Below are positions 12,471 through 43,943 of a stretch of DNA of 64,000 nucleotides, one piece after another. A program made the position numbers and the translations under genes. How positions within the stretch are numbered: the stretch's first letter is position 1; every line of letters begins with the position of its first letter. Source of the DNA: Takakia lepidozioides (lineage: Eukaryota > Plantae > Bryophyta); assembly GCA_030704615.1 (NCBI GenBank), contig CM060734.1, positions 21,514,001 through 21,578,000 on the forward strand, written 5' to 3'. Under the pieces are notes generated by a model, which made no database searches, had not been told where the DNA came from, and saw nothing but the letters and a program-made list of their open reading frames with translations.

Positions 12471-12920
12471 GTGAAGGGGCCAAGCGGTCAGTATCCCACA
12501 CACCCTGCGAAGGATGACTCCATTGTTTCTGTAATGTTGTCCAATGAATTCAAGTTAATGCATTGTGAAGCCAATAAGAAGCTTAGGAAGGAGAGAGTGC
12601 ACCCTCTCATGACTCAATGTCACATAGGGCACCTCTCGTTTTCATGTGTTGTTGACACAGGCTGTACCATGTTTGTTGTTCCATTGTCCGTGGTTCGACT
12701 ACTTGGTCTCAAACTCACTCCAGCCAAGGGTCATTGCAGATGGCACATGTTATGAACCCCTAGGTTTGGTCACCATCCCCATTAAGGTCAGTTGCAAGTC
12801 GGTCACACTGACTTGTACATATCGTCACCATTGGTGAGCAATTGCTGTTAGGCTTGGATTGGATGTGTGCTGTAGGGGCAAAGATTGATGTGGTTGAAAA
12901 CATCATGTGGCTTGCCAGTG
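12471..12920 (+). pseudogene. Aspartic protease of the outer Gypsy (frameshifted)
   Basis: SCVVDTGCT active site, then LLLGLDWM in a shifted frame. Confidence 0.85.
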
Positions 12921-13139
12921 GCAGCTCCTCCCCCCACAAGGTGCAGCTCAACTCTATCTCCTTGCCCGCTGGTTGTGCCACATCTCTCCCACATGCGAAC
13001 CATTGTTGCTGAAACAAAGCGGCAGGCGGGTGAGCAATACAACTGGACACGCTACTTTAACTTTGCCAAGACAGCCCCCTTCACCCCGTATCAATGGCAG
13101 TCACCTTTGTCTGGTAAGAAGAGTGGCCCTCCCATTCCA

Positions 13140-13430
13140 ATCCCAGGTAACACCACTCTTCTTCGCAATCCCGCTGACTTTGTCATACCTGCCTCCTCCC
13201 AAAAGATTGTTTCTCTTTGCCTCACCTTTCTTTGTCCACAAGGTCATTATCTTGAAGTCGAGGGGTGGATACTCTTGATGCTTTCCAAACATTGTTTGAT
13301 TGCATCTGGGGTGCTGGATCGGGGCTTTCGAGGGGAGCTCAGACTTCTTGTTGCCAACCCAGAACGCATACCTATCACCATCCGCAAGGGTCAGGTCCTC
13401 GCTCGACTCACTGCCACCCCATTGACAGAT
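13140..13430 (+). pseudogene. dUTPase-like domain between PR and RT
   Basis: GVLDRGFRGELRLLVAN (motif 3) and ITIRKGQVLARL (motif 4); motifs 1, 2 and 5 are degenerate or absent. Confidence 0.75.
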
Positions 13431-13495
13431 TTAGGAGAGGTGCAACATGCTTTAAGTTTTGCTGACATTGGCCTGTCGATGATCTTGTAGATCAA

Positions 13496-15120
13496 TTGCA
13501 TCTCTTAGCACAATCTGTCACTGCACCCAAGGTCAGTCCCCTGACTCCTGCGCAATCTGCTCATCTTGATCAAGTTCTAACTGATATCAAAATAGGCTCT
13601 GGTCTCACTGAAAATGAAAGGTCTCGTCTATATCGTGTTATTCGTGACAATCTTGATGTTTTCAGTGCTGGTTCTCATGATTTGGGATGTACCGAGGTTC
13701 TTCATCACGACATTATCACTAAAGGTAGCCCTGTCAAACAATATGTTTATAGAGAGAGCGTCAAAGAGCGCGAAATTATGCAAATCGAACTAACCAAGAT
13801 GCTGGATGCAAGAGTTATTAAACCCTCTATTTCCCCCTGGGCCAGCCCCATCGTGTTGGTTGCCAAGAAAGATGGTACCACCCATTTCTGTGTTGATTTC
13901 CGACGTCTCAATGCCCTAACAAAAAAAAATGTATATCCTTTACCTCGCATTAATGATACTTTGGATCAACTCAATGGTGCCACTCTCTTCTCTTCCTTGG
14001 ATCTTGCTGCGGGTTTTTGGCAGGTTCCACTCACAGAGTCAGCCAAGGAGAAAGCTATGTTTACTTGTAAGATGGGCCTCTTTCAGTTTGAAACCATGTC
14101 TTTTGGATTATGTAATGCTACTGCCACCTTTCAACGTCTCATGGATGTTGTTCTAGGGAACTTGCGCTGGGAGTATGCATTAGTATATGTTGATGACATC
14201 AACGTTTACTCAGCTGACTTTGATTCTCACATGCTGGATCTGAAGCGCGTTTTGTGCAGGCTTAGAGGAGCCGGTCTCAAAGTGAAAGCCAAGAAATGTG
14301 ACATGTGCATGACGGAGCTTCATTTTCTTGGCCACCTTCTCTCAGCCCAAGGCATTAGCCCTGACCCTGCCAAAATTCAGGCTGTCTGGGAATATCCTAC
14401 TCCACGTGACAAAAATTGTGTCCGTGCTTTTCTTGGGTTAGCCTCTTACTATCGTCGTTTCATTAAACATTTTGCTCACATTGCCGCTGCGCTTAATCAG
14501 TTGTTATGCAAAGATGTTCGCTTTCTTTGGGGCAAGTCCCAAATCACTGCTTTTGAGAAACTCAAAATTGCCCTCACCAATGCACCCATTCTGGTCTTTC
14601 CTGATTTTTCCCTGCCATGCTTCTGACCTGGCTGTTTCAGCTATTCTATGCCAAAAGAGAAATGGCACGGAACATGTGGTGGCCTATGCTTCCAGGCGGT
14701 TTGACAAACATGAAAAGAACTATAGTATCACTGATAAAGAGGGCCTTGCAGTCATTTTTGCCAGGGTGAAACATTTCCGGCAGTATCTCCATGGCTGCCC
14801 CTTTGTTATTCAGACTGATCATCTTCCATTGAAGGCTCTCAAAACCCCACGAGCACTCTTGGGACGCTTGGCTTGGTGGTCACTTACTCTTCAAATGTTT
14901 GAGTACGACATTGAGTATAAGAAGGGCAAAGCCAACAGCAATGCTGATGCTCTCACACGCACTGAGACTAAGTCCTCTGACCCTTATGTTACCTTAGATG
15001 ACCTTGCACACTGCTTACCATCTGGTGCTTCACACTTGCCTTCTTCCTCTCCTGACGGGTCCAATTTACTTGCTTTGTTTGCCACTGTTCCTTTTCTTCC
15101 ACCTGATCTCATGTCTGAAT
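13496..15120 (+). pseudogene. pol: RT-RNase H of the outer Gypsy
   Basis: SPWASPIVLVAKKDG, CVDFRRLN, LDLAAGFWQ, YVDD, VVAYASR, QTDHLPL. Confidence 0.95.
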
Positions 15121-15614
15121 GGGATTTGCTCTCCTTTTCTGCTGGTTGAGGTTGGTTTAGAGGTTGTACTGTCACGGTCATATTCTAGGTATGATATCAC
15201 TCTCTCTTCTCTGATTGAACTGTCCATTTCTCCTTCTAGTTCTGGTTTTGGCACTGAATCCTCTCCATAGGGAAATCTGCTTCTCTACTTCATTGTCCTT
15301 GGTTGCATCTTCATGAAGTCTCCCTTGTCATTCAGTTGAGCTGAAAGCCTTCCCCTGGAGATCACTGAGGCGGACACTCTGTTAGGCTCACACTAACCCA
15401 AGGGCTGGCTATGGCAGCTGCAACCATGGAGGACCTACTTTACCAAGCCCTCCTCCAGAAGTGTAAGACCAACACTCATCTGTCGGGCCTCTCTTCCCTC
15501 TCCTTAGGCAAGTCAACTATCATCTCCCCTCTCATCGGGAGGATGGCTCCATTAAGATTCGGACCTTATACCAAAAATCCGGGTAATGTAAATAACCGAA
15601 ATTAACCAAATTCC

Positions 15615-17227: not shown

Positions 17228-18140
17228 TTACTCTCCATGCCCAATCGGCCAACATATTTTTGCTGGAGAAGATCTTACCTTATGAAGGACTTGCTTGCTC
17301 CACACCATGGTCATGGCGGAACAATTCTCAGTAGAATGGTTATCCATTTTACAGGTAGTACAGTGTTTCTCCTTCATGTGGCATTCAGCCGTGGTATGGC
17401 CTTTATTCTGGCATTTTTTACCAAACACCCAACACCCTTCCTCCAATGTGTTGCAGCCTCTGTGGCATATTTTTTCAAGATTTCTTCTAGTCTTTTCTCA
17501 TAGTTGTCCCTCTTCAACTTTTCCTTCTTCTTGCTCTTCCTCTTGAGCTCTTGCTCTTCTTCCTCATCTGACTCATCTTCAGAGTCCTCATCATCCCTTT
17601 TATCTCTCCTGAGCATTCCCAATTGCTCAATTCTGTTGGCTGTTTCGAATGCCTCCTCCACCGTATTATGGGGTAGCATATCCACTTTCTTTTGTAATTC
17701 AGGTCTTAGTCCACTCACAAACCATGTCTTCTGTAACCCTGGTGCTGGTACAGCAGCCAGCTTTTTCATCATTAACTACATCTTTTCCATGTACTCTTCA
17801 ACAGTTTCATGCTTCTTTTGCCTTAACTGTTGTAAACTCCCATACACTTCATCCTCAGTTTTGCTTGTCCTGAACCTGTTCCGGAATGCTGTACTAAGGC
17901 CATTCCAGGTTAGGAAATGATTATTAGGAAACCTTGCATACCATTCACTTGCTTTCTTGATAAGTGAACAAGGAAACAGTCTCATCTTGGCATCATCGCC
18001 ATTCTCATTGTTCACAATACACATGTGCTCGAATTGGCTGATGTGTACATCAGGATCCTCTTTCCCTGCATATATTGGAAAAGGTGGTTTTGCCCGTGTT
18101 GGAGGTACCGCCATCTGTGGCCCTACACCCTGCCCACTGA
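17228..18140 (-). pseudogene. gag: Gypsy gag fragment with two zinc knuckles
   Basis: YAGKEDPDVHISQF, RLFPCSL..ASEWY, LRQKKHETVEEY, knuckles CQNKGHTTAEC and CTTCKMDNHSTENC. Confidence 0.85.
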
Positions 18141-18144
18141 CCAG

Positions 18145-21100
18145 ACGATAGTGAGATGGCTTGAAATTTGGAATTCAGATCAGACAGTGAAGGACCTGAA
18201 TCAGTTCCCGAAAAACACAATCCAGCCTGGCACGAAGGTGGAGGGCATCAGTGACACGGTGTTTGAAACCTGGCTTTACAAGGCCACATTTTGGAGTCAG
18301 GTATGTATCTTCTCTAGTGCCTACCTTCACGCAATTCTGCAATGTTTTTTCGGAGTGGAAACCTGACAGATGTTTCCTTGGCAGCTGGAGAAGCGCGCCA
18401 TACTAGTGCTCGAGCAAAATTTGAAGGACTTGAATATTTCAATGGTTTCCTCACCACAGATGACCTTAGAGGCTTACATTCGGAAGTGGAAAAGGCTCAC
18501 CTGGCGATACTGTTTTTTCCGGGAATTCTCGAAGGAGTGGAACATTTTGAGGTCCAACGATTTTGACAGTCAGGTTGGGGGTGAGTGGGCCATGATGCGG
18601 ATTGTCTACAGATGCACTCTCATATGCCCATCCTTGTATTTCATTGCGATGATCGTTGGCGATCATCGCAATTTTCTGTTGCTTACTGTGACCAACTCCA
18701 ACAGACAGGGCCGTTCCCAGGCTGCGAAGTCATTCTCATTCATGGAAGGAAGTGATGATTGGCACCGATCATCACTTTCACTACTGTAAGCTTTTGCAGA
18801 GAATCCTTCATTTCACCCAGAATAGTGAAGAACATTGTTTTGCTTTCGTGTTTCAGTCCTACACCTTTCCCACATTGGAAATTGGATTTTTCATCAAAAT
18901 GTGATGATCGGCGGCGATCATCACATTCTCTCGTTCTGCAGTGTGGTTCTTGCAAGGGAGTTGGATATCCATGTGCAGTCTCTCTCTTTAGGGAATGTAC
19001 TGATGATTGGCGGCGATCATCACATTCTCCTATTTTGTGAATTGACATTTTGGGAGTTGCTTTGGGGTTGCGAGTTTGCACGTACACAAAATATGTGCTC
19101 ATGGAGGGAAAACACTTGAGCGGCGTCCCTGATTATCTCGACATGTGGTCGGATCCTGCCAATGACCCAACCCTGTACAGAGCCGGGATTTTGAGGGACT
19201 GGAGTCCTGCCCATTTCCAGGACTGCGGATGGTACCTTGACTGCCCTCCTGAGCACACGACGTTTCAAGAACAACACATGAAACATATGAACAACCATGC
19301 GGAATGCTGGCGCCTCTCGACGACGACGAGTACCAGAGAAATATAGCTGCATTGGCCACGAAGGAACCTGCCCGGCAGGGAACGCCTTAGAAGGGCAAAA
19401 AGGCGGGGCGTAAGGTGAAAGACAAGGATGCAAAGGGTTCGGAGGTTATCACCAAGTCACTTGCCAAGGTAAAAGAGAAGGAGAAGGAGAAGGAGAAGGA
19501 AAAATATAAGGAAAAGGACAAAAACATGACCGCTGGGAGGTATACCGGGACTATTGAGTGCGTTTTCGATGCCAGGCCACACCCTTCCCAAGCGGACTTG
19601 CCAAGGGGAGATTAAGATTGTCAATGAGGGATGGCTGGCCATGATGCAGGAAGAAAGGGTACTCGGGTGTACCGTCGCCGACTTGGGACGACATGATCTC
19701 TTTCCTTAATCTGGTGAGAATCTTTCTTTTTGTCTGGGTGCAATGAAAGTGTAATTGCCAACATCGGTTTGTGTTTGTCTTCTTCCCTCTTTTTCGATGG
19801 TTCTCAAATTGGGCTTGTCTGTCGCAGGTGAGCACTGGGCCCTCCTACGTTTGCGGTGTGCAGAAATCCTTCGCCGCTGACATGGTCATTCTGGACATCC
19901 CGGACGGCCAGCCAGTTCCTGATGTTCCTCCAAAGGACGAGATGCCAACCTGGAACAAATTCGATGACAACTACTGGAGTTGGGTGTTCGGGTTCTGCAA
20001 TACTTTCTTTTCGGATGCAGGAACTCTTCTGCTGTTTCAGTCTTGTGACAAGGAGAGTCGTCGGGCATTGGCATCTTACCTGAAGTCGTCTGGGTTTGAA
20101 GTTCTTCGGACATGGAATTGTGTCAACATCCTCTACCTTGCGAAAGGGGGTTGTCATGGACAGCTGGTACGACTTTCCCATCCTGACTGAGCTTTTTTCA
20201 CTAGTGTTCTATATTTGTAGTGCCTTGCTCTTGCAGAATTTCCCTTAGGAGACCAGACAGCACTCCCTGGAGAGGTGCAAGGGAGAGAACCCCAGCGTTC
20301 ATGCAAACTCTCTTGGAGTCATACAACCACCATTCGGCACGGGTGGTCGACCTCTCCGTATCCACAGGTTCATTCTCGCCCTGTGTTTTAATTTTTTATT
20401 TCATCTTTGCTTTTGGCAGCCCCTCTAACCTGTTTATGTATTTTTGTTTGAGGCAGGTGCGACTTACCATGCTTGCAAGGCAGGCGGAAGAAGCCTTTTG
20501 GGCATGGATGGGGACTCGGACCTATTCAAGAGTGTCCTCCTCCCCCTTCTGTCCGGCTCAACGTCGAGCACACAGACTGAAAAGATTCAAATCCGGAATG
20601 ATGAGGATCCCGAAGACAATCAGGTCGACAATGACTTTTCATGTGAGAGTGTCTGCCATGGACTTCTCATTTGTCTTTGGGTGCTATGTTAGCGCGCAAA
20701 CATCATTTTATGAGTAATATCAATTTTCTGGGTCTCCCTTGCAGGAAAGGCAACTGTGGGTCTTTAGGAGCCTCCATGATGTGGGACGATTCGGTATTCG
20801 ACAGCCCCCTGCCCAGTTTCGTGCTTCCTGTGTATGCGGATGCAATGGCACTTCGCATGTCCGAGGCTCCATCCCCTGACCCCATAATGTTTGCTCGCGG
20901 GTGTAGAGTAGATATCCCAGATCCGGAGTTCTGAAATTCTTAGACTTGGATGCAGAGGATGCGGGGATATGTTATGCTGAGTCCGAGTCAGATTGAGCTT
21001 CACAGTTTCTATGTACTCTTTTCATCCTCATAAAAGAATTTTGACTTGTTCCGACTGTTCATTTGTCCCAAGTAGGAACGGAATCTTTAATTACAAAATA

Positions 21101-21575
21101 TACATTCAAGGGTTGACATGGCCCACATGATATTGACAGACAAGAAAATCCAACAAAGTTTGCAATTGCTTTCAGGGAGAAAACTTCATCAATCCTTCGT
21201 AGTGTTCGCACTCATTCATCTTACATTCATCCATCCTGCATTCATCAATCTTTTGCGTTGTTCGCACTCATCCATGTTATATTCATCCATTCTACATCCA
21301 TCCATCCTACATCCATCTAATGTTTTCATCCCTCTTTCATCACTCATTCATCCACTTGCACTACTTACTACGCTATTTGAAAACTGTACAAGGGAGGAAT
21401 GCCCACATTGTGTTATTATGCCATCGTGCGTGTTTCCGCGGTAATGGGTGCTCTTCCGCGGAAATAGACCCTGCTTCTTCCCGAGCGGGATGGGCCCACG
21501 CCGACGTGGCGTGAGCCTGGATGTGCTCACATGCTCACACGCTCATGCGGCCAGGCTCACGCGGAGGCGTCCCTG
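18145..21575 (+). mobile_element. Element A: DNA-transposon-like unit with CAGGG terminus carrying an amino-methyltransferase-like gene (5' end lost)
   Basis: Ends in ...CCAGGCTCACGCGGAGGCGTCCCTG (21575) with GCTCAC/GTGAGC subterminal repeats; homologous throughout to inverted element B. Confidence 0.7.
18150..20934 (+). pseudogene. Multi-exon gene with C-terminal beta-class N6A/N4C DNA methyltransferase-like domain (copy A)
   Basis: Approximate exons 18150-18300, 18370-18611, 19080-19713, 19828-20166, 20237-20367, 20457-20646, 20745-20934, mostly GT-AG. Motifs VILDIPDG, FSDAGTLLLF, GFEVLRTW, ERTPAFMQTLLES..RVVDLSVSTG/ATYHAC..GRSLLGMDGD. Confidence 0.7.
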
Positions 21576-23089
21576 CTTCGAAAGCCAGGTAAGCCCCAAA
21601 TCTGTGCCCCAAGGATCACAATGATTGGAAGTAGAGTTGGCTGGCAGCAGACTTAGCAGCCCCACCGACTTCTCCCAATTGATCTTTAGCCAAGATGCAT
21701 GGCAGAAGTAGTCCAGAAAATTCAAAGCTGCGGACACATTCGAGGAAGAAGAATTGTCAATGAAAAGCGTGGTGTCGTCCACATACAGGGAGGATTTTAT
21801 AGAGGGTCCAATGAAGGGGCATGGGGAATGGATAGGCCCATAGAATCATTACGATTATCCATCAGATGTCCCAAGCCATCAGCGGCTATAAGAAAAAGAA
21901 AGGGAGCGAGGGGGCAACCCTGGCGAACAGATCTGAATAGCGGGAAAGACTTTGAAAGGACTCCATTGATCAATACCTTGCTGGATGCTGAGGATGGCAC
22001 AATACGAACCCAAGATAGGAAGTTCCCGGTGATCCCCGAGGCCTCAAGAGCTCCGAGAAGGTAGTCCCAATTAATGTTGTCAAAAGCCTTATGAAAATCC
22101 AGCATCAGACGCGCCAGGGGTTGTTGAGCAATAGCAGCAGAATGGAGGGCTTCGTTGGTGAGCAATATGTTATCCAGGATCATCCTACCTTTGAGAAATC
22201 TTGTTGGTTCAGGCCTAAGGAGCTTAGGCAGCAGGGGCTGCAGGCGCTGAGCTAAGGCCTTGGCAAGGATTTTATAAGTAGAGTTCAAAAGCGTAATAGG
22301 CCTATAGTTGCCCAGGTCATCCCTATTGCCTTTCTTGTAAATCAGGGTAATCACTCCTTGCGATAATTGAGATGGCATGATTCCTTTTGCAAGGATGTCA
22401 TTTGCCAAATCAAGCAAATCTTGAGCAATGCAGTCCCACATTGCCTTGAAGAACTCCACCGGAAGGCCGTCTAATCTTGGAGTTTTCATAGAACTGAGTG
22501 ATTCAATGGCATGCAACAGCTCCATGGATTCAAAGGACTTAGAAAGCAAGGCTTGGTCAGCAGCAGATAGCGTATTAGGGAAGGAGAGAAGAACCTCGTG
22601 CCTCGAGGCTTGGGAGTGGGAGGTGTCCAGAATTTTGGAGAAAAGAGCGGAGAAATGCAGAGCTGCGACCTCTGCCATTTCCTTGGGCTTGCTGAACTGT
22701 TGCCCAGAAGAATCTGAAATAGAGCTGATTATCGTGGCCTCCCTCCTATGTTTTGCCTTTTGAAAAAAGTATGCGTTCATCTTCTCTCCTTTGAGAGACC
22801 AATTAACCCCGGCTTTGATCCTCAAAAAGTGGTCTTTCTTCGCCTCCATAGACCTAAGATTTCTCTTTGTAGCCAGGTATGAGTCCATAGCAACAGGGTT
22901 TTGAATGCCCGCCTCCACCCTTTTATGGCAATGCATTAGGCATTTCGACAAGGCCTTGGACCCCTTGACCGTCATTACCGCCGGCACTAGAGGAGGCAAC
23001 CACAATGCTAGTATCTCTGCTCTCCACAAAAACTTCAAAATCCCTATTTCCCCCATATACAAATGCTTCAAAGCCATCCACTTGACAGC
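21576..23089 (-). mobile_element. LINE (L1-like) ORF2 reverse transcriptase fragment
   Basis: GLPVEFFK, NYRPITLLN..YKILAK, LDFHKAFD, VRQGCPLAP, YVDDTTLF, LKINWEKS. Confidence 0.95.
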
Positions 23090-23849
23090 CAGGGATGCCT
23101 CGGCGTGAGCCTGGTCACGTGAGCGCGTGAGCGCAACTGCGCTCACGCCACGTCACCTTGCGCCAATGCCACGTCACGGGGCTCACTCCACGTCATCACA
23201 CGTGAAGGCCGCGTCACCACGCGCCCAGAAAGAAGTGGAGTGTATTCCCGCGGATTGGCACCCTTTACCGCGGAAACAAGCTGGACGACATAATAAAAGG
23301 CATTGAATAAAGGATGGATGAATGTACAGTTGGATGATAAACATATGGATGAGTGTGAAAAATGAATGTAGATGGATGAATGAGGGATGGATAAGAGTAA
23401 AATGGATGAATGTATAATGGATGTTGAGCAATGACAAAAATTCATGACAGGAAGATGCATGACCAAAACTTTTGACGAATGCACAACGTATATGAAATGA
23501 GTGTGGAAGGTTTGTGGGGTGGATTAAAGAGTACAGAGGATGAATGTACAATGGATGTTGAACAAAGGAAAAAATTCATGAATGGAGCACGCATGAATAC
23601 ACTGTAGATGAATGCACAATGGATATGAGAAGAGTCAGGGAGGTTTGTGAGATGGATTCATACATATTGCAATTTAAATGAAAGTTGATTATGTGATTAT
23701 TATTTGTTCTAAAGGAACAACTACGGTGGAGGAAGGGGATTCAACGTTTTCCAGATAGTATGAAAATGAATATTAAAAGAATATAGTTCAGTCTGACTCA
23801 GAGTCAGTACAATGTATCCCCGCTTCCTCTGCATCTAAGTCTAAGTATT

Positions 23850-26800
23850 TTAGAACACCGGATCCACGCTGGATACACCTACGGCTGGGCAGTAAAAAGT
23901 CAGGGGATAGGTAGCCGTGTGAAGTGTCATTGCTTCGGCATAAACATAAAGCAGAAAATTGGAAAGGGGGCTGTCGAAAACAGACTCGCCAGAAATGACT
24001 ATATCTCCTGAAGATCCACCGCTGCCTTTCCTGAAAGACAGCCTGAAAAAGTTATTACTGTAACTTTGATGTTATTGAGAAATTGAGTATGGCTCCCAAA
24101 GAGGGTTTAGCACTTACTCACATGAAAAGTCGTTGTCGACCTGCTTATCTTCGGGATCGTCATCATTTCGAATTTGAATCCGATCAGTCTGTGTGCCTGA
24201 AGTGGAGCCAGACAAAAGGGGGAGGAGCACTGTGTTGTAGAGGTCAGAATCACCCTCCATGCCAAAAAGGCTTCTTCCGCCTGCATGCATGGTAAGTTGC
24301 TCCTGCACCAGACAGGAGGACATGAACAGTCTGGTGGGGGGGATTTAAGCAGATGAAACTGTTGAAAGAAAACCAATTCGGAAGGGAAAGAACGAACCTG
24401 TGGACACAGAAAGATCGACCACCCGTGCAGAGTGGTGGCTGCATGACTCCAGCAGTATTTGCATGAACGCTGGGGACTTTTCCTTTGCACCTCTCCATGG
24501 AGTGCCATCTGGTCTCTTCAGAGTCTGACTAGACTGCATGAAGTTGTACAAAATGTCATCGACATGGGGCTCATAGGGGGGGTTGACGAAACAACCCTGG
24601 TCAGAAATCTCAAAGCTGCGGATGGAGGATGGTGTCTTGGAGGTGCGAATCCTGCGCAGGCAGATCGCCTCGAACATCCTTGTCTGCCAAAGATAGCAGG
24701 TTAGTGTGGTAAACACAATCTATAGTGGAAGTGTGTACATCGGCTATTCAGGACTCAGACACAAAAAAATCATTTTTATCACGAATCGGTGATGATCGGT
24801 GTCGATCATAACAGATTTTACTAGAGTGGAGCTGCAGAGAACATTGAAACTCATCATGAAAGCACAAGCAAAAGGGAGACGGCATACTAGCTGACCAGGG
24901 AAACCCCCTTTCACAAGGTAGAGGCTGTTCACACAATTCCAAGTGCGCAAAACTTCAAACCCTGAAGACTTGAGGTATGATGCCAATGCCCGACGACTAT
25001 CATTGTCACATGACTGAAAAAGCAGAAGTGTCCCTGCATCAGAGAGGAAGTTATTACAGAACCCGAACACCCAACTCCAGTAGTTGTTTTCAAAGAACGA
25101 GACTGAAATACTACCAACGAAACTTTCAGAGAAAAAAGAAAGAAACTGGAATTCTCACCAGATTGAGGAATGAGATTATATTGTCCCAGGTAGGCGAAGG
25201 CACCCCAGTGTATCCTCTCTTTCGACTTTGCATCATCGACAACCAACCCTCATTAACAATTTTCATCTCTCCTGCCGAATCAGAACGGGAAGGGTGTGGC
25301 TTGGCATCGAACACGCACTGAACAGTGCGGGTATATCTTCCAGCAGTAAAGTCCTGCCCACTCTCCATCTCCTTTTCTTTCTCCTTCCCATTGTCCTTTT
25401 CCTTCTCTTTGGACTTGTCTTTGTCCTTTGGCTTTACTGGTGAGATGGCTATGACATCAACAGCCTTGTCTTTTGGTTTGCGGCCTGCCTTCTTTTCCTT
25501 CTGCGGCATTCCCTGAGCATCAGGCTCCTTGGCAGCCAATGTTGCTATGTTTCGTTGGTACTCTTTGTCAGTCAAAGGCGCCAGCATCTCAGCGTTATTG
25601 TTCAAGTATTTCATATACTGTTCTTGAAAGGTCGTGTGCTCCGGTGGGCAGTCAAGGTACCACCCACAGTCTCTGAAGTGAGAAGGACTCCAGTCCTTCA
25701 ATATCCCTGCAGTATACATGGTTGGATTGTTTGCAGGGTCCGACCACATGTCAAGATAGTCTGGAATTCCGCTCAGGTGATTTCCTTCCATAAGCACATA
25801 TTTCATGTACCTGAAAAAAAGGAGATAAATCCCAACCCACCAAAGCACTCAGTGAGTAAGATGCAAGTAGAACAGAATGAAAGAAACATAGAATGAAATG
25901 GCTCTGAGAACTGCTCCAAGGACCTTTCAGGACCACACGACTGCTCCAGATGTGAATGTCGTCAACGCCATTCAAAACATTCCATTCAATGATACTGTAA
26001 ATACACCCTAATCCACGTGAATGCAAACTATCGTTTTGGAATGACACAGACATAGAAGTGAATGTTGTCAACGACATTCACTTTGGATTTGTGAATACAC
26101 TCCTAATCAAGCCTAATTATTCCTCAAATGAAGCAAAATCAAAGGATGGAAATCATAAACTCGAGTAAGGAACCCTCCCGGAAAACTCAATGCACATTCA
26201 TAACAAACATATCACTGAGGACCTCACAACAACACTGTATGTGAATGACGTCAACGCCATTCACAAAAATACCAACAAGGAACCAATTACTTAGCTCCCA
26301 ATCCATGTAAATTCAAATTGTCGCTGGTGAAGAATACAGACACAGAAGTGAATGTCGTCAACGACATTCACTTTGGATTTCTCATATCAGAGCTTATCAA
26401 GCCTCCAGATTCCTCGCAAGAGGCAAAAACAATGCAGAACAACTGAATGTCTGCATTGACATTCAACAAAATAAAGTGAGGAACCCTCACTGTAAACTCT
26501 ATGGACATTACAAAAATTTACATAATTCTGAGGACCTCTCAACAACTCCGGATGTGAATGTCGTCAACGCCATTCAAGTACATTATCAATTCTAATCAGG
26601 GACACTATAATTACACCCTTAGATCCTAACCAGGTGAATTCATATACTCGCTTAAGAATGACTCAGACAAAGAAGTGAATGTCGTCAACGACATTCAATC
26701 TGGATCTATGATTGTAATCCTTATGAAGCCACATTTTTTCCCAAAAAAAGCAGTAGAGTTTCCAGTATGACATTGCACCTGTACACAACTCGCATCATGG

Positions 26801-26880
26801 CCCACTCTCCTCCAACCTGACTGTCAAAGTCGTTGGACCGTAAAATGTTACCATCTTTGGAGAACTCCCGGAAAAAAGGC
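23850..26880 (-). pseudogene. Amino-methyltransferase-like gene, copy B
   Basis: Same exons as A. Lacks the DIPD segment but keeps MFEAICLRR...VNPPY...EKSPAFMQILLES..VVDLSVSTG. Confidence 0.7.
25945..26700. repeat. Intronic hairpin repeats GTGAATGTC-GTCAAC-G(A/C)CATTCA
   Basis: About 7 copies near 25952, 26058, 26241, 26348, 26445, 26554 and 26675, set in longer repeated units. Confidence 0.85.
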
Positions 26881-27368: not shown

Positions 27369-28451
27369 GTTTTCAAGTTTAAAAATTCAAAGTTACACCC
27401 AAAATATCTGGTAACTGGTTCCCGGTTCCCTAAGTTCTATATGGCATCCTAGGTTCCCTGGCCACGTGCCTGCTGTTCCCCTCCATTTCATTTGAGTTCA
27501 ACAGCTCACCATGCTTTGGAATCCCAACCGTCTTCTACCACAAACCGTGGTGACGATGGAGGTCGTGAAGCGATTCTTCCCAGTGAACCCTCGAGAGACG
27601 AGTCCCCTGCGCACTTGATATACACTCTCTTAATAGAGATCAAAATCAGCAAGGAGACACCATTGACGACACCCAGAGATCAGAGACAAGTACTTGCGCA
27701 GTTCGGAGGCCACAGCATCCCCTCTGGACACTGAGCGGGAATAGCTGCTACACAGCAGCTCAGTCTATCGTCAGCTCCTATACCTACTAGCTTCCTGCCC
27801 CTGCCCCTCCTTCTTCACAACAAGATTGACTGTGGATATGCGGAGAGGTGGTCTGCCTGGGATCACCATGAAATTGCACAGATCGGGAATATCTGGTCGG
27901 CATCAGCACTATAGTGCCAGGGCACATAAACCAGATTGTAGGAACAGCCAGAGGAAATGCAGGTTATGCCAGCATCATCCAGACCATCCCTGCATCTTGG
28001 ATATGAATCCTCCAGCAGGGCCGTTGCCTCCATTGCCCGACACTTGGGTTACATGCTCAGCCAGACCTAATCAGGTCATTTCCGTGATAGATTTCAGCGG
28101 CATTCAAATCACTGGCCTCGCTATGCACTGCTGCCCTCAATCAAACATCCTGCAAAGCTGTCACACACGATGCAAAGCTGGCTGTCTTTCTCTGGCAGAT
28201 CGCACATAGAATTCTAAAGGTAGGGCGTTGGCTTCAATTCACCCGTGCACTGCTCTGCTTATGCTGCTCGCTTGGGGTTTCAGAATCTCTGGAACACTGC
28301 CTACTGCCATGCAACATACCTTCAAAAATCTGGCCCAAAATTCACTGGCTGCTCGGACACTGGCATGACCAAACCTCTTTAACTCCAATCAGCCTGCTAC
28401 TGAATTACGATCCCATCACCAAGCAAAATCTATCCCAATGCCCGTTGAGCT

Positions 28452-28951
28452 NNNNNNNNNNNNNNNNNNNNNNNNNNNNNNNNNNNNNNNNNNNNNNNNN
28501 NNNNNNNNNNNNNNNNNNNNNNNNNNNNNNNNNNNNNNNNNNNNNNNNNNNNNNNNNNNNNNNNNNNNNNNNNNNNNNNNNNNNNNNNNNNNNNNNNNNN
28601 NNNNNNNNNNNNNNNNNNNNNNNNNNNNNNNNNNNNNNNNNNNNNNNNNNNNNNNNNNNNNNNNNNNNNNNNNNNNNNNNNNNNNNNNNNNNNNNNNNNN
28701 NNNNNNNNNNNNNNNNNNNNNNNNNNNNNNNNNNNNNNNNNNNNNNNNNNNNNNNNNNNNNNNNNNNNNNNNNNNNNNNNNNNNNNNNNNNNNNNNNNNN
28801 NNNNNNNNNNNNNNNNNNNNNNNNNNNNNNNNNNNNNNNNNNNNNNNNNNNNNNNNNNNNNNNNNNNNNNNNNNNNNNNNNNNNNNNNNNNNNNNNNNNN
28901 NNNNNNNNNNNNNNNNNNNNNNNNNNNNNNNNNNNNNNNNNNNNNNNNNNN
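28452..28951. other. Assembly gap (500 N)
   Basis: Run of N. Confidence 1.
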
Positions 28952-31479
28952 CTATGGACGATTACCACGAGTTCAGGTGAGGACATGAAGCAGAGATTGA
29001 GGAGTGGAGGATGTATTGGTCACCTGACTACGTCTCCATTACTCGACGCACGACGCGACCAGTAGCTGCATCTCGGTACCAATAGTTCACTGCCAGCACT
29101 AGTAGTGGAGCAAGTAGTGCTGGTACTTCTGTAGGTGGTACAGTTCAAAAGGTGCTACTACTCCTCCTGCCACTACTAAACACATGTGCCATAGATTCAA
29201 CCGTGGTGGAGTTCTTCCAGAGTTGCGGAGGATAACCAAAGGTGTACGGACAGAGAAGCTGCGAAGTTTGCAAGACTTCAGCGCAAACCCAGTGAGAGCA
29301 TGCGAGAGGCGTACACTCGTATGAGGCGCTTGATAAGTGTGACCCAAGGGGTTACTGAAGCTCAGGCAATCCAGTTTTGGTATGGAATTCTGGACAAGGA
29401 GCTCAAGAGAAGGGTGCGAGATGCAACTTGTTACAAGCAGCCCAACTACATTAGCAGATGTGTTTCTGCTGGCTGAGCGGATTGAGCTCAACATGGTGGA
29501 GGAGCGAGTTGTCACCATTGGATTTGGCAAGGACATGCCTGCACGAGGCGCAGCTGCCAGCCCACAAGCACAAGGGTGCCAGCAGCGTGGTCAGGGGGGC
29601 AAGGTTTCCAACCCAAGTTCCATGGAGCTTACAGGGGACCTCAGGTGCAGAGGCCCGTGGCATCTTTTGCAGGCCAACAGCAACCAGGGGTGATATGTTG
29701 GACATGTGGAGGACCCCATGTCAAGAGAGATTGCCCAGAGAGTGGCAGAAGGCCGGCACAAGCACAGCCTGCACAGTTGCAGTGTGGGCATTGTGGCAAG
29801 TATGGGCATGGAGATGCCCAGTGTTATGACTTGCATCCTGAGTTGCGCCCAGGCCAGTTCCAAGGGAAAATGGTGGCCGGGGGCGAGGTGGACAACCCAG
29901 AGAGGACGAGTTGGTCGGGGCAGAGGTGCAGGCCAAGGGCAAGCTCAACATGGCCAAGGACGCGGAGGTCAGGGTGTTGATCAAGGCATGGCCAACCGGC
30001 TTCAGCAGCTAGAGCAGAGGCTCGCTGCCATGGCTATAGCTCAGGCGGTACCGGCTCCCAGGCGGGATGGTCCACCTCCTGCTCCTGAGGGAGGAGATAT
30101 GGGAGGCATGGGATTTATGTGCGGAGCAGCACTACCACTAGAGCAGGTGGAATCTGCTGCAGCCGTGACTCGAGGAGCAGCACGAGTTCCTGAGCCACGA
30201 GGTGCAGAGGTGGAATTGGATCCACAGCGTGGGGAGGCAAGCCGTCAGGCGAGGCTTCCTCAGTCATTCACATTGGCGGAGACTGTATCGACGCCATCCA
30301 TGGCACCTAGTTCTCGCCCGACTGTTCCGAGGCGGAGGTTACTATGCCATTGGGGAGAGCTACACGTGCAGCATTGACTCCTGCTGCCAAGGCTAGTGCG
30401 GCTGGTGTGTTATTGGGGGCAGCCACCTCTGTGTGTCAGGCCCCACTGTTCTCGGCAAATGATTGCCACGCCGGGGGTAAGGCCAGCTGCAAGTGTTCAG
30501 ACTAGCAGCAACACTCTGTGAGAGTGGGGAGGTCATTTCATCTTCTGCGGAGTTAGTGGAAGGTGTAGTGGCAGAGGGATCCTCGGATTTGAGGGTCAAG
30601 ACTGCCACGGCTGCGCCCTGGCAAGCTGCAGCTGCCAGGTTGACGGAGCTGCCAGCTAGGCCAGCCTTTGAGCGCGCCATGGTGACACCTGGAGTTGTCT
30701 TTGTTAGACAACCAGGGAGGCATTTTCACTTTGAGTGGACCAGCAGGCAAGAAGTACCGGCCACTGCGGGTCTTGTTGGACTCGGGAGCTCAGCCACTGA
30801 TGTTGGGCAGAGCTGCTATTGCAGGTTTGGGCCTCATGGAGGCGGATATGGAGCTTGCCTTTCCAGATACAGACATATCTGGGAGGATCAGAGCAGGCTC
30901 GGGGCATGACACGGCATCAGTTGGCCATTAGACTGCAGCCGGATCATCCTATCGATGGCTCAGTAATGCGAGCCAAGGCCATTGTGACAGACAAGTCTCT
31001 TACGATGTCCTCGTTGGTGGGGCAGTGTTATACCCATGGGCTTCACCCTGGACTTTGGGAGGAGTCAGCATCCTACATGCCTGGATGGCAGTCAGGCGAT
31101 GGTCGCCGTGCACAACTCCCTGTGACATTCAGTGGGGGTATAGCGGCTGCCCAGCGGGGCAAGATGCCAACACTAGCCGCCTTTACAGCTGCAGTTAGTT
31201 GCCTGGAGAGTTGCTGGAAGGCAATGCCCATGCAGAGGATGTGCCACCTCCAGCAGAGCAGGACGACATGCATGGTATGGCGGAGTTGCCTGCCATGGTT
31301 GCTCACACTCCATTGTGGGGTACGAGCAAGGATTTGCAGCAGGTTGCTGATCGACGGGTACAACAAGCCTGGGTAGAGGCTTTTGTTCCGTCAGGAGAGG
31401 AAGAGAGTGCGGGTATTGCACCAGGACCACCTCAGTTGTCACCATTGGATACCACACCTATTGTGTGGCAGTATCCGGA

Positions 31480-33878: not shown

Positions 33879-35575
33879 TTGGAGCATGCTGGGCTTGGAG
33901 CGGTGCTCACACAGGTGGATGATGAGGGAAGAGAGTTCGTAGTGGCTTATGCTAGCCGCTCGAACAATGCTGCAGAGTCTAAGTATAGCTCATATGAGGG
34001 AGAATGCTTAGCTGCAGTGTGGGCCGTGGCACACTTCAGGTGCTATCTATATGGCAATCTCTTCACCCTTGTCACGGATCACCAACCACTCAAGTGGTTG
34101 ATGGAGTCAGACAAGCTTACGGGGAAGCTTGCACGGTGGGCACTCATCCTTCAAGAGTATGACTTTCAGGTGGTGCATCGACCGGGTTTGGTCAATCGCA
34201 ATGCAGATGGGTTGAGTCGCAATCCATGCACGAGCCAACAGGATGACACTGGAGCTCGGTGGCATGGTGAGACGGACGAGGAGATGGTGCCCGGATGGCA
34301 TGCATCTGCATTTCTGTGTATCTTGGCAGCGGAAGGCCAGGTTGGACCTGCAACAGGGATGACTGTAGATCAAGTGTCTGAGGACCCTGAGGCCAGCAAT
34401 GAGCAAGGTAGCACCAAAGATATACATGAGGATTCAGTTGTGTTGGACTACCTCCGCACTGGAGACACGGCAGCCACTGTGACTGCCAAGGAGAGGGATC
34501 GGATCCTACAACGAGCCAAGAGGTTCAGGTGGGAGGGGACACACCTGCTCCGAGTGTGGGAAGATGGTCGAGTGAGGATTGTGCCTCACCCAACACAGCG
34601 GGCACGGTTAGTGCGCCATGCCCACGAGGAGTTGGGGCATTTTGGGGTGCATCGTACTCATAGTCTACTGCAGGGGCAGTATTGGTGGCGTGGTATGCAC
34701 ACAGAGGTGCAACAATTTGTGGCTAGGTGCATGGTGTGTGACAGGGTGCGTGCTTCATTCAACGCCCCTACTCCACAATTGCACCCTCTTCCGATCATGG
34801 GATTGGGCTACAGGTGGAGTCTTGACTTCGCAGGGCCGTTGCCACTGACCATGCGCCACAACAAGTACGTGTTGGTGATGCTGGAGCACTTCTCCAAGTG
34901 GATTGAATTGGTTCCATTGCCTGATAAGGCTAGTGAGGGAGCTGCGTATGCATTCCTGGATTGTGTGCTTAGCCAATTCGGTGCTCCAGCTGAGGTACTC
35001 ACGGACCAAGGGAGAGAGTTCTTGGGGGAGTTTCAGGCTTTGTGTGACAAAGCCTTGATAGACCACCGCACCACTTCTCGGGATCATCCTGAGGCCGATG
35101 GCTTGGCAGAGAGAGTTGTTCAGACAATAAAGAGGGGTTTGCGCAAGTATGGCTTGCAGAAGGGACACCTAGGAGATTGGGACCTTCAGTTACCCTGGTT
35201 AGCCATGGGCTACAGGTTCAGCAAGCAAGCATCACTTGCCTCCTTCTCACCATACTTTCTTCTCTTTGGCCGAGAGCCGGATTTGCCTACATCCATTCGT
35301 AGAGAAGCTGCTACAGTTCTTAACCTTGACGATCCGGACGTGTGGGCACGTGCATGTGAGCAGCGTGCAGAGTTGTTCAAGAGAGTCATGCCCATGGCTT
35401 TCGAGAACCTTGCCATTGCACAACACCGTGATACGTTGAGGTATGCTACCATACGTGGTGGGGGCTATCGTCCTGGGGTTCGGAGATTCAACCCTGGTGA
35501 CTATGTCTATCTGCAGCAGACTGCTCCTACGACCCTGGATGTGACTGCAGGACGTGTTATTTTGAGGGTTCGAAG
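33879..35575 (+). CDS. RNase H-integrase of the DNMT-Gypsy (long open frame)
   Basis: 580-aa ORF with RH, HHCC zinc finger and DDE core. Confidence 0.9.
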
Positions 35576-35714
35576 GTCTTGCCCTCAGGCGTCTTGGTCT
35601 TGGAGGGTCGGGATGGCATAACTTGGAAGGACCATGTGCGTAATTGTGCGCCATGTCACCTTCCGAACGTCGATGGCAGGATTGACCCAAACCTGGCAGT
35701 GGTATCTGCAGGTT

Positions 35715-41636: not shown

Positions 41637-42397
41637 CTGAAGCCCCCTTTATCTTAGCCCACGCACATGCTCTTGCGTCCCTGTTACTATGGTAGGCAAG
41701 CGAAGCACTCAGAACGCAGAGGCAGTTGAGGCACATGGGCTGAAAGCGTCTTGACTCCTAACCTCTTTATCTAGAAAGCAGTGCGGTAAAGATACTTGCA
41801 ACTCTCCATTGAAGACACGCATCGTGGTCTCTCTCTCTCTCTCTCTCTCAAATTATCTCAAATACTGAGTCTCCTATGTACATGGAAGAGGGTTCTCCGA
41901 GTCTCCCTAGGAATTACTTACACGGGGACAATCAGCAAGAAGGACATGACAACGAATCATAAGTTATGTGGTCCGAGCAATTTGTAGATGTCATTCACCC
42001 GAAATAATGATGTAATGCCAGGGCGGATTCGCCCGATAGACAGCTATGCGTTGGCGTGACAGACCTCCGCTTTGTGGGGCCAGGCGAATTGGCGAGAGGA
42101 AGCCAGCTGTACCGAGAAGACAGCCAGGTGGCTGTTGCGCGGGTACTAACCGAGAATAGCCGGTGCATCTCGGTCTTACCGTTTAAGGTTACTACAGTCC
42201 ATGTGCCGGGCTTGGCAGTGCTGGCAACCCTCGCACTCCTCCTCGTTCCTGCCTGCGCGTTGCTTGCTGGCCTGCGCAGCCATTGTGGTGGCAGCGGCGT
42301 GCATTTCCATCTGAAGGTGTCTGGGAGGTGGAGGTGTGGTTGTGCAATTCTTTTGTTACCGCTGTCGATCTTCGTTGGAAGGGAAGAGCTCGTGAAA

Positions 42398-43943
<1,546 letters not shown>

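Follow-up and report, generated by a model that had tools for sequence, protein, structure and literature searches.

Two decayed copies of a probable land-plant transposon family with a methyltransferase-fold accessory gene and palindrome arrays

A 64-kb stretch of Takakia lepidozioides DNA (contig CM060734.1, positions 21,514,001 to 21,578,000 of the forward strand; below, the window) contains two copies, A and B, of a multi-exon gene whose product is predicted to have a DNA amino-methyltransferase fold in its C-terminal half. We think it quite probable that these are two decayed 3' portions from a large family of cut-and-paste DNA transposons of nonseed land plants, in which the gene is an accessory, and we propose that it serves self-recognition. 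Each fragment comprises the distal two-thirds of the spliced accessory gene and the 3' terminus of the element.

Copy A (18145-21575, forward strand) and copy B (26877-23090, reverse strand) lie tail to tail in inverted orientation. In a self-BLAST, 18513-21575 of A paired with 26877-23090 of B in collinear blocks of 68 to 86% nucleotide identity. Both copies are closed by the terminus CAGGGA(C/T)GCCTC. Its 12-nucleotide string, CAGGGAYGCCTC, has exactly two perfect matches in the window, at 21564-21575 (reverse strand) and 23090-23101 (forward strand), and both sit exactly where the homology between A and B stops. An earlier note on this DNA had described two diverged copies that share this terminus, which the self-BLAST and the terminus search bear out. 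The peptides that it had quoted were also found in place: VILDIPDG (about 19885-19908), SDAGTLLLF, GFEVLRTW, E(K/R)xPAFMQ...DLSVSTG, and ATYHAC...GRSL..GM(E/D)GD.

The earlier note had further placed the copies inside elements. The shared 3' terminus agrees with this. However, each copy retains that terminus only and is cut at its 5' side (A at about 18145, B at 26877), and neither a second terminus, a terminal inverted repeat partner, a target site duplication, nor a transposase was found in the window for either copy. The cut in A lies against a retrotransposon gag open reading frame (ORF) (17776-18114, reverse strand; Retrotrans_gag, E 1e-11), which abuts its first retained exon. A long interspersed nuclear element (LINE) reverse transcriptase fragment (RVT_1, E 7.7e-23) fills about 21600-23089 (reverse strand) between the two termini and is not element DNA. 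Splicing was deduced from GT..AG borders and from frame continuity with homologues. The intron borders are GT..AG and the frame agrees with that of full-length homologues, so the claimed multi-exon, spliced gene can be recognized, but both copies of it are pseudogenes. Their features are as follows; L005 is an assembly contig that carries a relative.

Copy A
18145-18300, forward strand: first retained exon, N-terminal region, from about residue 67 of the moss homologues onward; aligns with Ceratodon proteins and with an L005 exon (tblastn E 8e-6); GT donor at 18301
18385-18613, forward strand: exon 2, helical N-terminal region; 33 codons in common with B, 30 of them identical; the donor that follows is mutated (AG/AT, versus AG/GT in B)
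18646-19023, no strand: intron array of four 24-nucleotide palindromes with 10-nucleotide arms GTGATGATCG and a 4-nucleotide spacer
19080-19713, forward strand: large exon, decayed; the frame changes three times or more, and an in-frame stop falls at about 19388; GT donor at 19714
19828-20166, forward strand: exon with the motif IV-like loop DIPDGQPVP and motifs V to VIII; 94 phmmer matches, best E 3.7e-21
20249-20367, forward strand: remnant exon with motif X-like PWRG..E(R/K) and motif I-like VVDLSVSTG; about 368 nucleotides present in B are missing here, namely, the preceding intron and about 56 codons upstream of the PWRG remnant
20457-20642, forward strand: exon with ATYHAC..GRSLLGMDGD (motif II/III-like) and an acidic tail
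20750-20996, forward strand: last exon, with a frameshift near 20925 and a stop at 20994-20996; its C-terminal LDLDAE motif is common to the moss proteins
20997-21575, forward strand: 3' noncoding and subterminal region, ending in the terminus at 21564-21575

Copy B
23090-23789, reverse strand: terminus (23090-23101) and subterminal and 3' noncoding region
23790-24030, reverse strand: last exon, frameshifted
24122-24299, reverse strand: exon with ATYHAC and GRSLFGMEGD; a 5-nucleotide deletion after ATYHAC causes a frameshift near 24285
24396-24683, reverse strand: exon with a variable region that contains NPPY (24584-24573), motif X-like PWRG..EK, and motif I-like VVDLSVSTG
24789-24812, no strand: one palindrome of the A type in an intron
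24888-25088, reverse strand: partial exon with motifs V to VIII; a deletion of about 180 nucleotides has removed the acceptor and the first 45 or so codons, including the DIPD loop
25159-25809, reverse strand: large exon, intact, 217 codons; end of the N-terminal region, Lys/Glu-rich linker, and start of the methyltransferase-like domain
25952-26698, no strand: intron array of six 24-nucleotide palindromes with 10-nucleotide arms GTGAATGTCG and spacer TCAA, in tandem units of about 290 nucleotides
26778-26877, reverse strand: fragment of the first retained exon; 26877 is where the homology with A and with the family ends

Both copies are dead, 5'-truncated pseudogenes. Their reading frames are destroyed, and therefore the two window copies can do nothing themselves. 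The locus is functionless, and its worth lies in comparative evidence. When six indel-free exon segments (291 codons) were pooled, nonsynonymous divergence (dN) between A and B was 0.093 and synonymous divergence (dS) was 0.889, a dN/dS of 0.105. This indicates that most of the subfamily divergence accrued while the protein was functional and that the disabling lesions came later. Between the two subfamilies, the gene evolved under strong purifying selection, which acted in live elements. A and B are independently decayed 3' portions from different subfamilies of one element family. Because they are dead fragments of two subfamilies, merging them would yield a chimera; our searches used single exons or full-length database homologues, with exons left unjoined and A and B kept apart.

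A phmmer search with the exon at 19831-20166 of A against 1.84 billion representative sequences gave the 94 matches listed above, the best at 42% identity. The long matches included four proteins that are annotated as hypothetical in the moss Ceratodon purpureus (P0051, P0095, P0096, and P0097; 758 to 810 residues, on four chromosomes) and uninterrupted ORFs in public read assemblies (P0054, 596 residues; P0049 and P0100, 494 residues). All window exons are collinear with these relatives: the N-terminal exons, the large exon, the DIPD exon, the variable-region exon of B, the PWRG...STG exon, and the LDLDAE tail. Further protein searches with P0051 and with a family alignment added only Ceratodon paralogues. 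The family is old and multicopy, occurring in the window plant, in Ceratodon, and in many environmental plant-associated assemblies. Intron positions vary by lineage; L005:3710-5251 is a single 513-residue ORF, and three or more introns interrupt the corresponding part of the window copies. A phase 1 intron immediately after the motif I-like x-T-G is common to the window copies, L005, and P0011.

Exon-by-exon Pfam scanning of ten window ORFs gave nothing relevant. However, when we built a profile from eleven relatives and ran it on all PDB sequences, the bacterial enzyme CcrM came first (E 1.7e-3), in two collinear stretches that cover motif IV and motifs I to III. The other methyltransferases among the PDB matches listed were all of the beta class (DpnA/M1.HpyAVI, TTHA0409, and bdelloid N4CMT). 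DNA methyltransferase families of PHROGs matched the same C-terminal stretch (1.6e-5 to 5e-5). The Pfam family PF01555 (N6_N4_Mtase) scored below threshold on P0054 (20.8 bits versus a cutoff of 26.7) and had no match in nine other relatives or in the window exons.

For the fold, we examined the database homologue P0054 in place of the broken window copies. An AlphaFold model of P0054:296-572, built from a 65-row family alignment, had a mean predicted local distance difference test score (pLDDT) of 76.5. Foldseek searches of the PDB with this model returned only beta-class N6-adenine/N4-cytosine enzymes in the top 41 rows, with E values down to 1.6e-11. VIA-align Z scores were 18.3 for CcrM, 18.1 for MboIIA, 18.0 for M.BceJIV, 17.8 for rotifer N4CMT, and 17.2 for PvuII; overall, beta-class enzymes scored 18.3 to 14.8, versus about 11 for MT-A70 enzymes. 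The ten nearest ESM Atlas clusters were all 100% PF01555, and one also had ParB_N. Both the CcrM alignment and the exon order of the window follow the permuted motif order (IV-V-VI-VII-VIII, variable region, X-I-II-III). On this modeling, the C-terminal half of the protein is predicted to be a genuine beta-class DNA amino-methyltransferase fold with motif order IV...X-I-II. The profile and structure searches uphold the earlier note's identification of a beta-class N6-adenine/N4-cytosine methyltransferase-like protein. The resemblance might be a chance pattern of short motifs, as the empty exon-wise Pfam scans of the window would allow. However, independent profile and structure searches converge on one fold class, and the Foldseek and VIA-align results already refute chance; we give it practically no weight.

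Although the fold is that of an amino-methyltransferase, its catalytic and S-adenosylmethionine (SAM) loops are altered. At the motif IV position, the 63 aligned members read D51/E8/Q3/N1, hydrophobic, P57, E34/D22, G42/N14, L56, P49, V49, P54 (residue and number of members). The family consensus is D-hydrophobic-P-(E/D)-G-L-P-V-P, and copy A has DIPDGQPVP. None of the 63 members has (D/N/S)PP(Y/F/W). Motif I is V-V-D-x-x-A-(S/A/G)-T-G instead of FxGxG or D-P-F-x-G-x-G-T-T; its first glycine occurs in a minority of members and its last in 15 of 18. The acidic ALE.D of motif II/III is kept in all five members compared; the window copies read GMDGD (A) and GMEGD (B). The earlier note had remarked that DIPD and LSVSTG depart from DPPY and FxGxG; this is borne out, for motif IV in all 63 members. 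Since the variant loop is present throughout the family, it is a conserved trait rather than decay. The note had also pointed to an NPPY in copy B. The string is indeed there, in an exon partly deleted from A, but no relative conserves the positions that align with it, and we rejected it as a catalytic motif in favor of a chance string in a variable region.

The aromatic residue of amino-methyltransferase motif IV stacks on the flipped base. Intact members might nevertheless be active DNA N6-adenine or N4-cytosine methyltransferases, with D-x-P-(E/D) as a working variant of motif IV. Their fold is complete, the segments that resemble motifs X, I, and II/III (ALE.D) are conserved, a G-x-G loop survives in some members, and purifying selection extends to the variant loop, which argues that the loop matters. 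However, the aromatic residue and the double proline of the catalytic loop, whose roles are established knowledge, occur in none of the 63 members; PF01555 stays under its gathering score; and the conservation is equally compatible with a binding role. We consider active enzymes of this kind rather unlikely. A noncanonical or catalytically inert module that binds DNA or SAM would be somewhat likelier than not, and likelier than a conventional writer of N6-methyladenine (6mA) or N4-methylcytosine (4mC), because the stacking aromatic and one motif IV proline are replaced throughout the family.

Beside the gene lie arrays of palindromes. The array of A is in the intron after the second exon, and that of B is in the homologous intron. 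A search for the A-type palindrome found five matches in the window (four in the A intron and the one at 24789-24812 in B) with none expected, and a search for the B type found six, all in the B intron array, with 0.01 expected. The two types share one plan (10-nucleotide arms that start with GTGA and end with TCG, and a 4-nucleotide spacer). Three central arm positions distinguish them, and the changes are symmetrical between the two arms, as would be expected for a dimeric reader with shifted specificity. At the Ceratodon purpureus locus on CM026442.1 (L001), 14 copies of CAGCCTACG-GTGA-CGCAGGCTG lie upstream of the gene, and L005 has ten copies of TGTCGGATCCGACA in an intron, with about zero expected in each case. 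In every lineage examined, palindrome arrays with 9- to 10-nucleotide arms and a 4-nucleotide spacer stand beside the gene, and their sequence differs each time. The pairing of gene and array is thus kept while the site sequence changes, which is the pattern expected of a coevolving protein and binding site. The two window subfamilies form a natural pair, whose proteins are about 85% identical and whose palindromes have three symmetrical differences in each arm. The intronic palindrome arrays were missed by the earlier note, as was the absence of the upstream exon and the candidate transposase described below.

In moss, the carrier can be followed much further than in the window. Four paralogous loci located on different chromosomes have more than 16 kb in common, including DNA beyond the 10-kb upstream flank, and run to one exact end, L001:16035 and its equivalents (...CACACCTGTGTTTTTCCC), which lies 1.2 kb downstream of the stop codon. 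Read inward, the moss and window ends have two blocks in common: GTGAGC, 15 nucleotides from the tip, and CCGCGG(A/T)A, about 170 to 200 nucleotides in. The homologues are therefore multicopy and end at a defined element terminus, rather than being the single-copy host genes that the earlier note had named as a refuting outcome. Inside the shared region, on the strand opposite to the gene, is a 714-residue ORF (L001:621-2765, reverse strand) with a zinc finger-like N terminus and a D...E...D...C.FH pattern. Its named Atlas look-alikes are almost all Mutator-like element (MULE) clusters, at 0.80 to 0.88; we take this as a lead only.

A host gene, domesticated or horizontally acquired, that was duplicated in inverted orientation would account for the multi-exon structure and the purifying selection without any transposon, and the moss annotation treats its copies as ordinary hypothetical genes. 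However, both window copies are truncated and disabled, their homology ends at a sharp common terminus with subterminal repeats, and at least four dispersed moss paralogues on different chromosomes share the DNA described above with identical ends. We regard a host gene as very improbable.

The carrier might also be a hAT (or other) element rather than a Mutator-type one. The CAGGGATG terminus recalls the Ac/Ds end, and some 4 kb past the moss element there is a hAT transposase ORF (DUF659 plus hAT dimerization domain). However, the DNA shared by the paralogues stops at L001:16035, before this ORF (19932-23378), which has GC-rich subterminal arrays of its own; the moss terminus begins with GGGAAAA and not CAGGG; and the ORF that is conserved inside the shared region looks MULE-like. 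A hAT carrier was judged quite unlikely, the only hAT ORF seen (L001:19932-23378) being outside the paralogue-shared DNA. Beside the moss element are two units (L001:17030-19600 and 19300-24500) bounded by inverted GC-rich CGGGCGCGAGC-type arrays. The first encloses a protein kinase-like ORF and the second a 1148-residue hAT transposase (DUF659 plus hAT dimerization domain). They are probably a nonautonomous and autonomous hAT pair.

Relatives also have an exon upstream of those kept in the window (L005:600-1088 and L001:8640-9239, forward strand). It encodes IPL..L..VRP followed by (D/E)GNHR, a ParB/Srx-like signature. The L001 and L005 versions are 36% identical, and the exon shows about 78% DNA conservation among the moss paralogues. 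The annotated moss models (758 to 810 residues) seem to start too late, with this exon lying 0.8 to 1.4 kb before the annotated ATG. The N-terminal exons that the window does keep were considered as ParB-like and rejected, since fold and profile searches were negative.

Several points weigh against our reading of a cut-and-paste transposon whose accessory protein recognizes its own element. The extreme tip differs between the window (CAGGGA...) and moss (GGGAAAA...), so the similarity of the two ends is positional. The 714-residue ORF had no Pfam, PDB, or plasmid tblastn match, and its apparent MULE assignment draws on look-alikes below 0.9 and on our reading of the sequence. For the GNHR exon, Pfam, NCBIfam, a PDB profile search, and hhalign against P1 ParB were negative or uninformative with respect to ParB identity, and a short motif is what suggests the ParB/Srx label. 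By tblastn, the window has no counterpart of that exon or of the transposase ORF, and the linkage of gene and transposase is seen only in moss. The N-terminal region kept in the window has no recognizable fold by Pfam, PHROGs, PDB profile, AlphaFold (pLDDT 57), Foldseek, or Atlas. Finally, it is co-occurrence that suggests that the protein may bind the palindromes.

Other features of the window are separate from the two copies. At 12885-15149 (forward strand), the pol region of a long terminal repeat (LTR) retrotransposon includes a dUTPase domain (PF00692, E 1.3e-6), with RVT_1 and RNase H ORFs immediately downstream of it; the element is a plant Ty3/Gypsy-type retrotransposon that bears a dUTPase. 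A Gypsy element at 33879-35621 (forward strand) has RNase H, integrase zinc-binding, and rve domains. An ORF with a 14-3-3 domain (42056-42946, forward strand; E 1.8e-60) sits amid transposons and appears to represent a host gene, whole or as a single exon. An assembly gap (a run of N at about 28450-28970) leaves X runs in ORFs at 28405-29065, and nearby element boundaries are unreliable.

If the family is a transposon with an accessory gene, as we favor, then in intact elements the protein would recognize the element's own palindrome array. It might then act on the DNA or chromatin of the element, for example, by self-marking or by protecting it against silencing by the host. The full protein of relatives would begin with the ParB/Srx-like upstream exon, and the element would also encode the MULE-like transposase. 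A more specific version of this would be a land-plant system of transposon self-recognition in which a ParB/Srx-like clamp and a retooled methyltransferase domain read the coevolving array and either deposit an unconventional mark (6mA, 4mC, or another SAM-dependent mark made through D-x-P-E) or shield the element, so that it escapes silencing. We offer this version as a speculation that is unlikely to be right in all its parts. The family has kept the complete fold under strong purifying selection, its catalytic loop is replaced in every member, and palindrome arrays of its own are always alongside. This makes it a concrete candidate for the way in which a transposon might recognize or mark itself.

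DNA amino-methyltransferases of the bacterial type are rare among eukaryotes, and the use of 6mA or 4mC by plants is debated. The domain described here has the fold and the permuted motif order of the bacterial and phage PF01555 enzymes (CcrM, M.BceJIV, MboIIA, RsrI, PvuII, and M1.HpyAVI). Many bacterial and phage amino-methyltransferases of the beta class are fused to a ParB N-terminal domain. Unlike the PF01555 enzymes, to which it is 12 to 20% identical, our family has D-x-P-(E/D) in place of DPPY/SPPY and A-x-T-G in place of FxGxG, and its gene is eukaryotic, intron containing, and transposon borne.

METTL14 and ciliate MTA9 are inert methyltransferase-fold partners with a degenerate motif IV, selected for nucleic acid binding. 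By analogy, the family here also retains its methyltransferase fold under selection even though motif IV is degenerate. However, METTL14 and MTA9 belong to the MT-A70 class, whose enzymes are weaker structural matches (Z about 11), whereas this is the PF01555 class, and no partner enzyme is known here. Bdelloid N4CMT (PDB 8s9m/n/o; Z 17.8) and Marchantia MpDN4MT1a/b are closer in that they too have a beta-class, bacterial-type fold in a eukaryote. MpDN4MT1 is described as a host gene with TSPPY (bioRxiv 10.1101/2021.02.12.428880). Whereas N4CMT and MpDN4MT1 are host genes with a canonical motif and demonstrated activity, ours is apparently transposon cargo with a variant loop, known here from its sequence.

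The nearest precedents are accessory genes of algal transposons. One study describes an Ectocarpus transposon, Sola1-1_Ec32, with an accessory gene for a ParB-like plus N4-cytosine/N6-adenine DNA methyltransferase protein, and it cites similar proteins encoded by transposons of green and red algae (Genome Biol 2025, PMC12477816). Its authors propose there that the accessory protein binds and epigenetically modifies its own element (PMC12477816). As in Sola1-1_Ec32, the accessory gene here is separate from the putative transposase and would join prokaryote-type domains. Compared by description, the two differ in that Sola1-1_Ec32 is a Sola1 element of an alga, whereas our carrier is apparently Mutator-like, its host is a land plant, and its catalytic loop is noncanonical family-wide; also, the window lacks the ParB part. 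For Bostrychia, a preprint describes Plavaka elements with PAG2 (N6-adenine methylase plus SET) and PAG3 (ParB plus 2-oxoglutarate oxygenase) beside inverted-repeat arrays, and its authors propose that the accessory protein binds its own element (bioRxiv 10.1101/2025.02.11.637652). Tandem inverted-repeat arrays adjoin a transposon accessory gene in both cases, but the domain combinations and the carrier superfamily are different, and the arrays here are in introns or upstream of one gene. The earlier note had called this gene undescribed, which holds only in part, because accessory genes that combine ParB and an amino-methyltransferase were published for algal transposons in 2025. Our literature search found no report of a land-plant counterpart. 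The family is a land-plant variant of this recently described algal theme, and its conserved noncanonical loop and subfamily-specific palindromes are what is notable about it.

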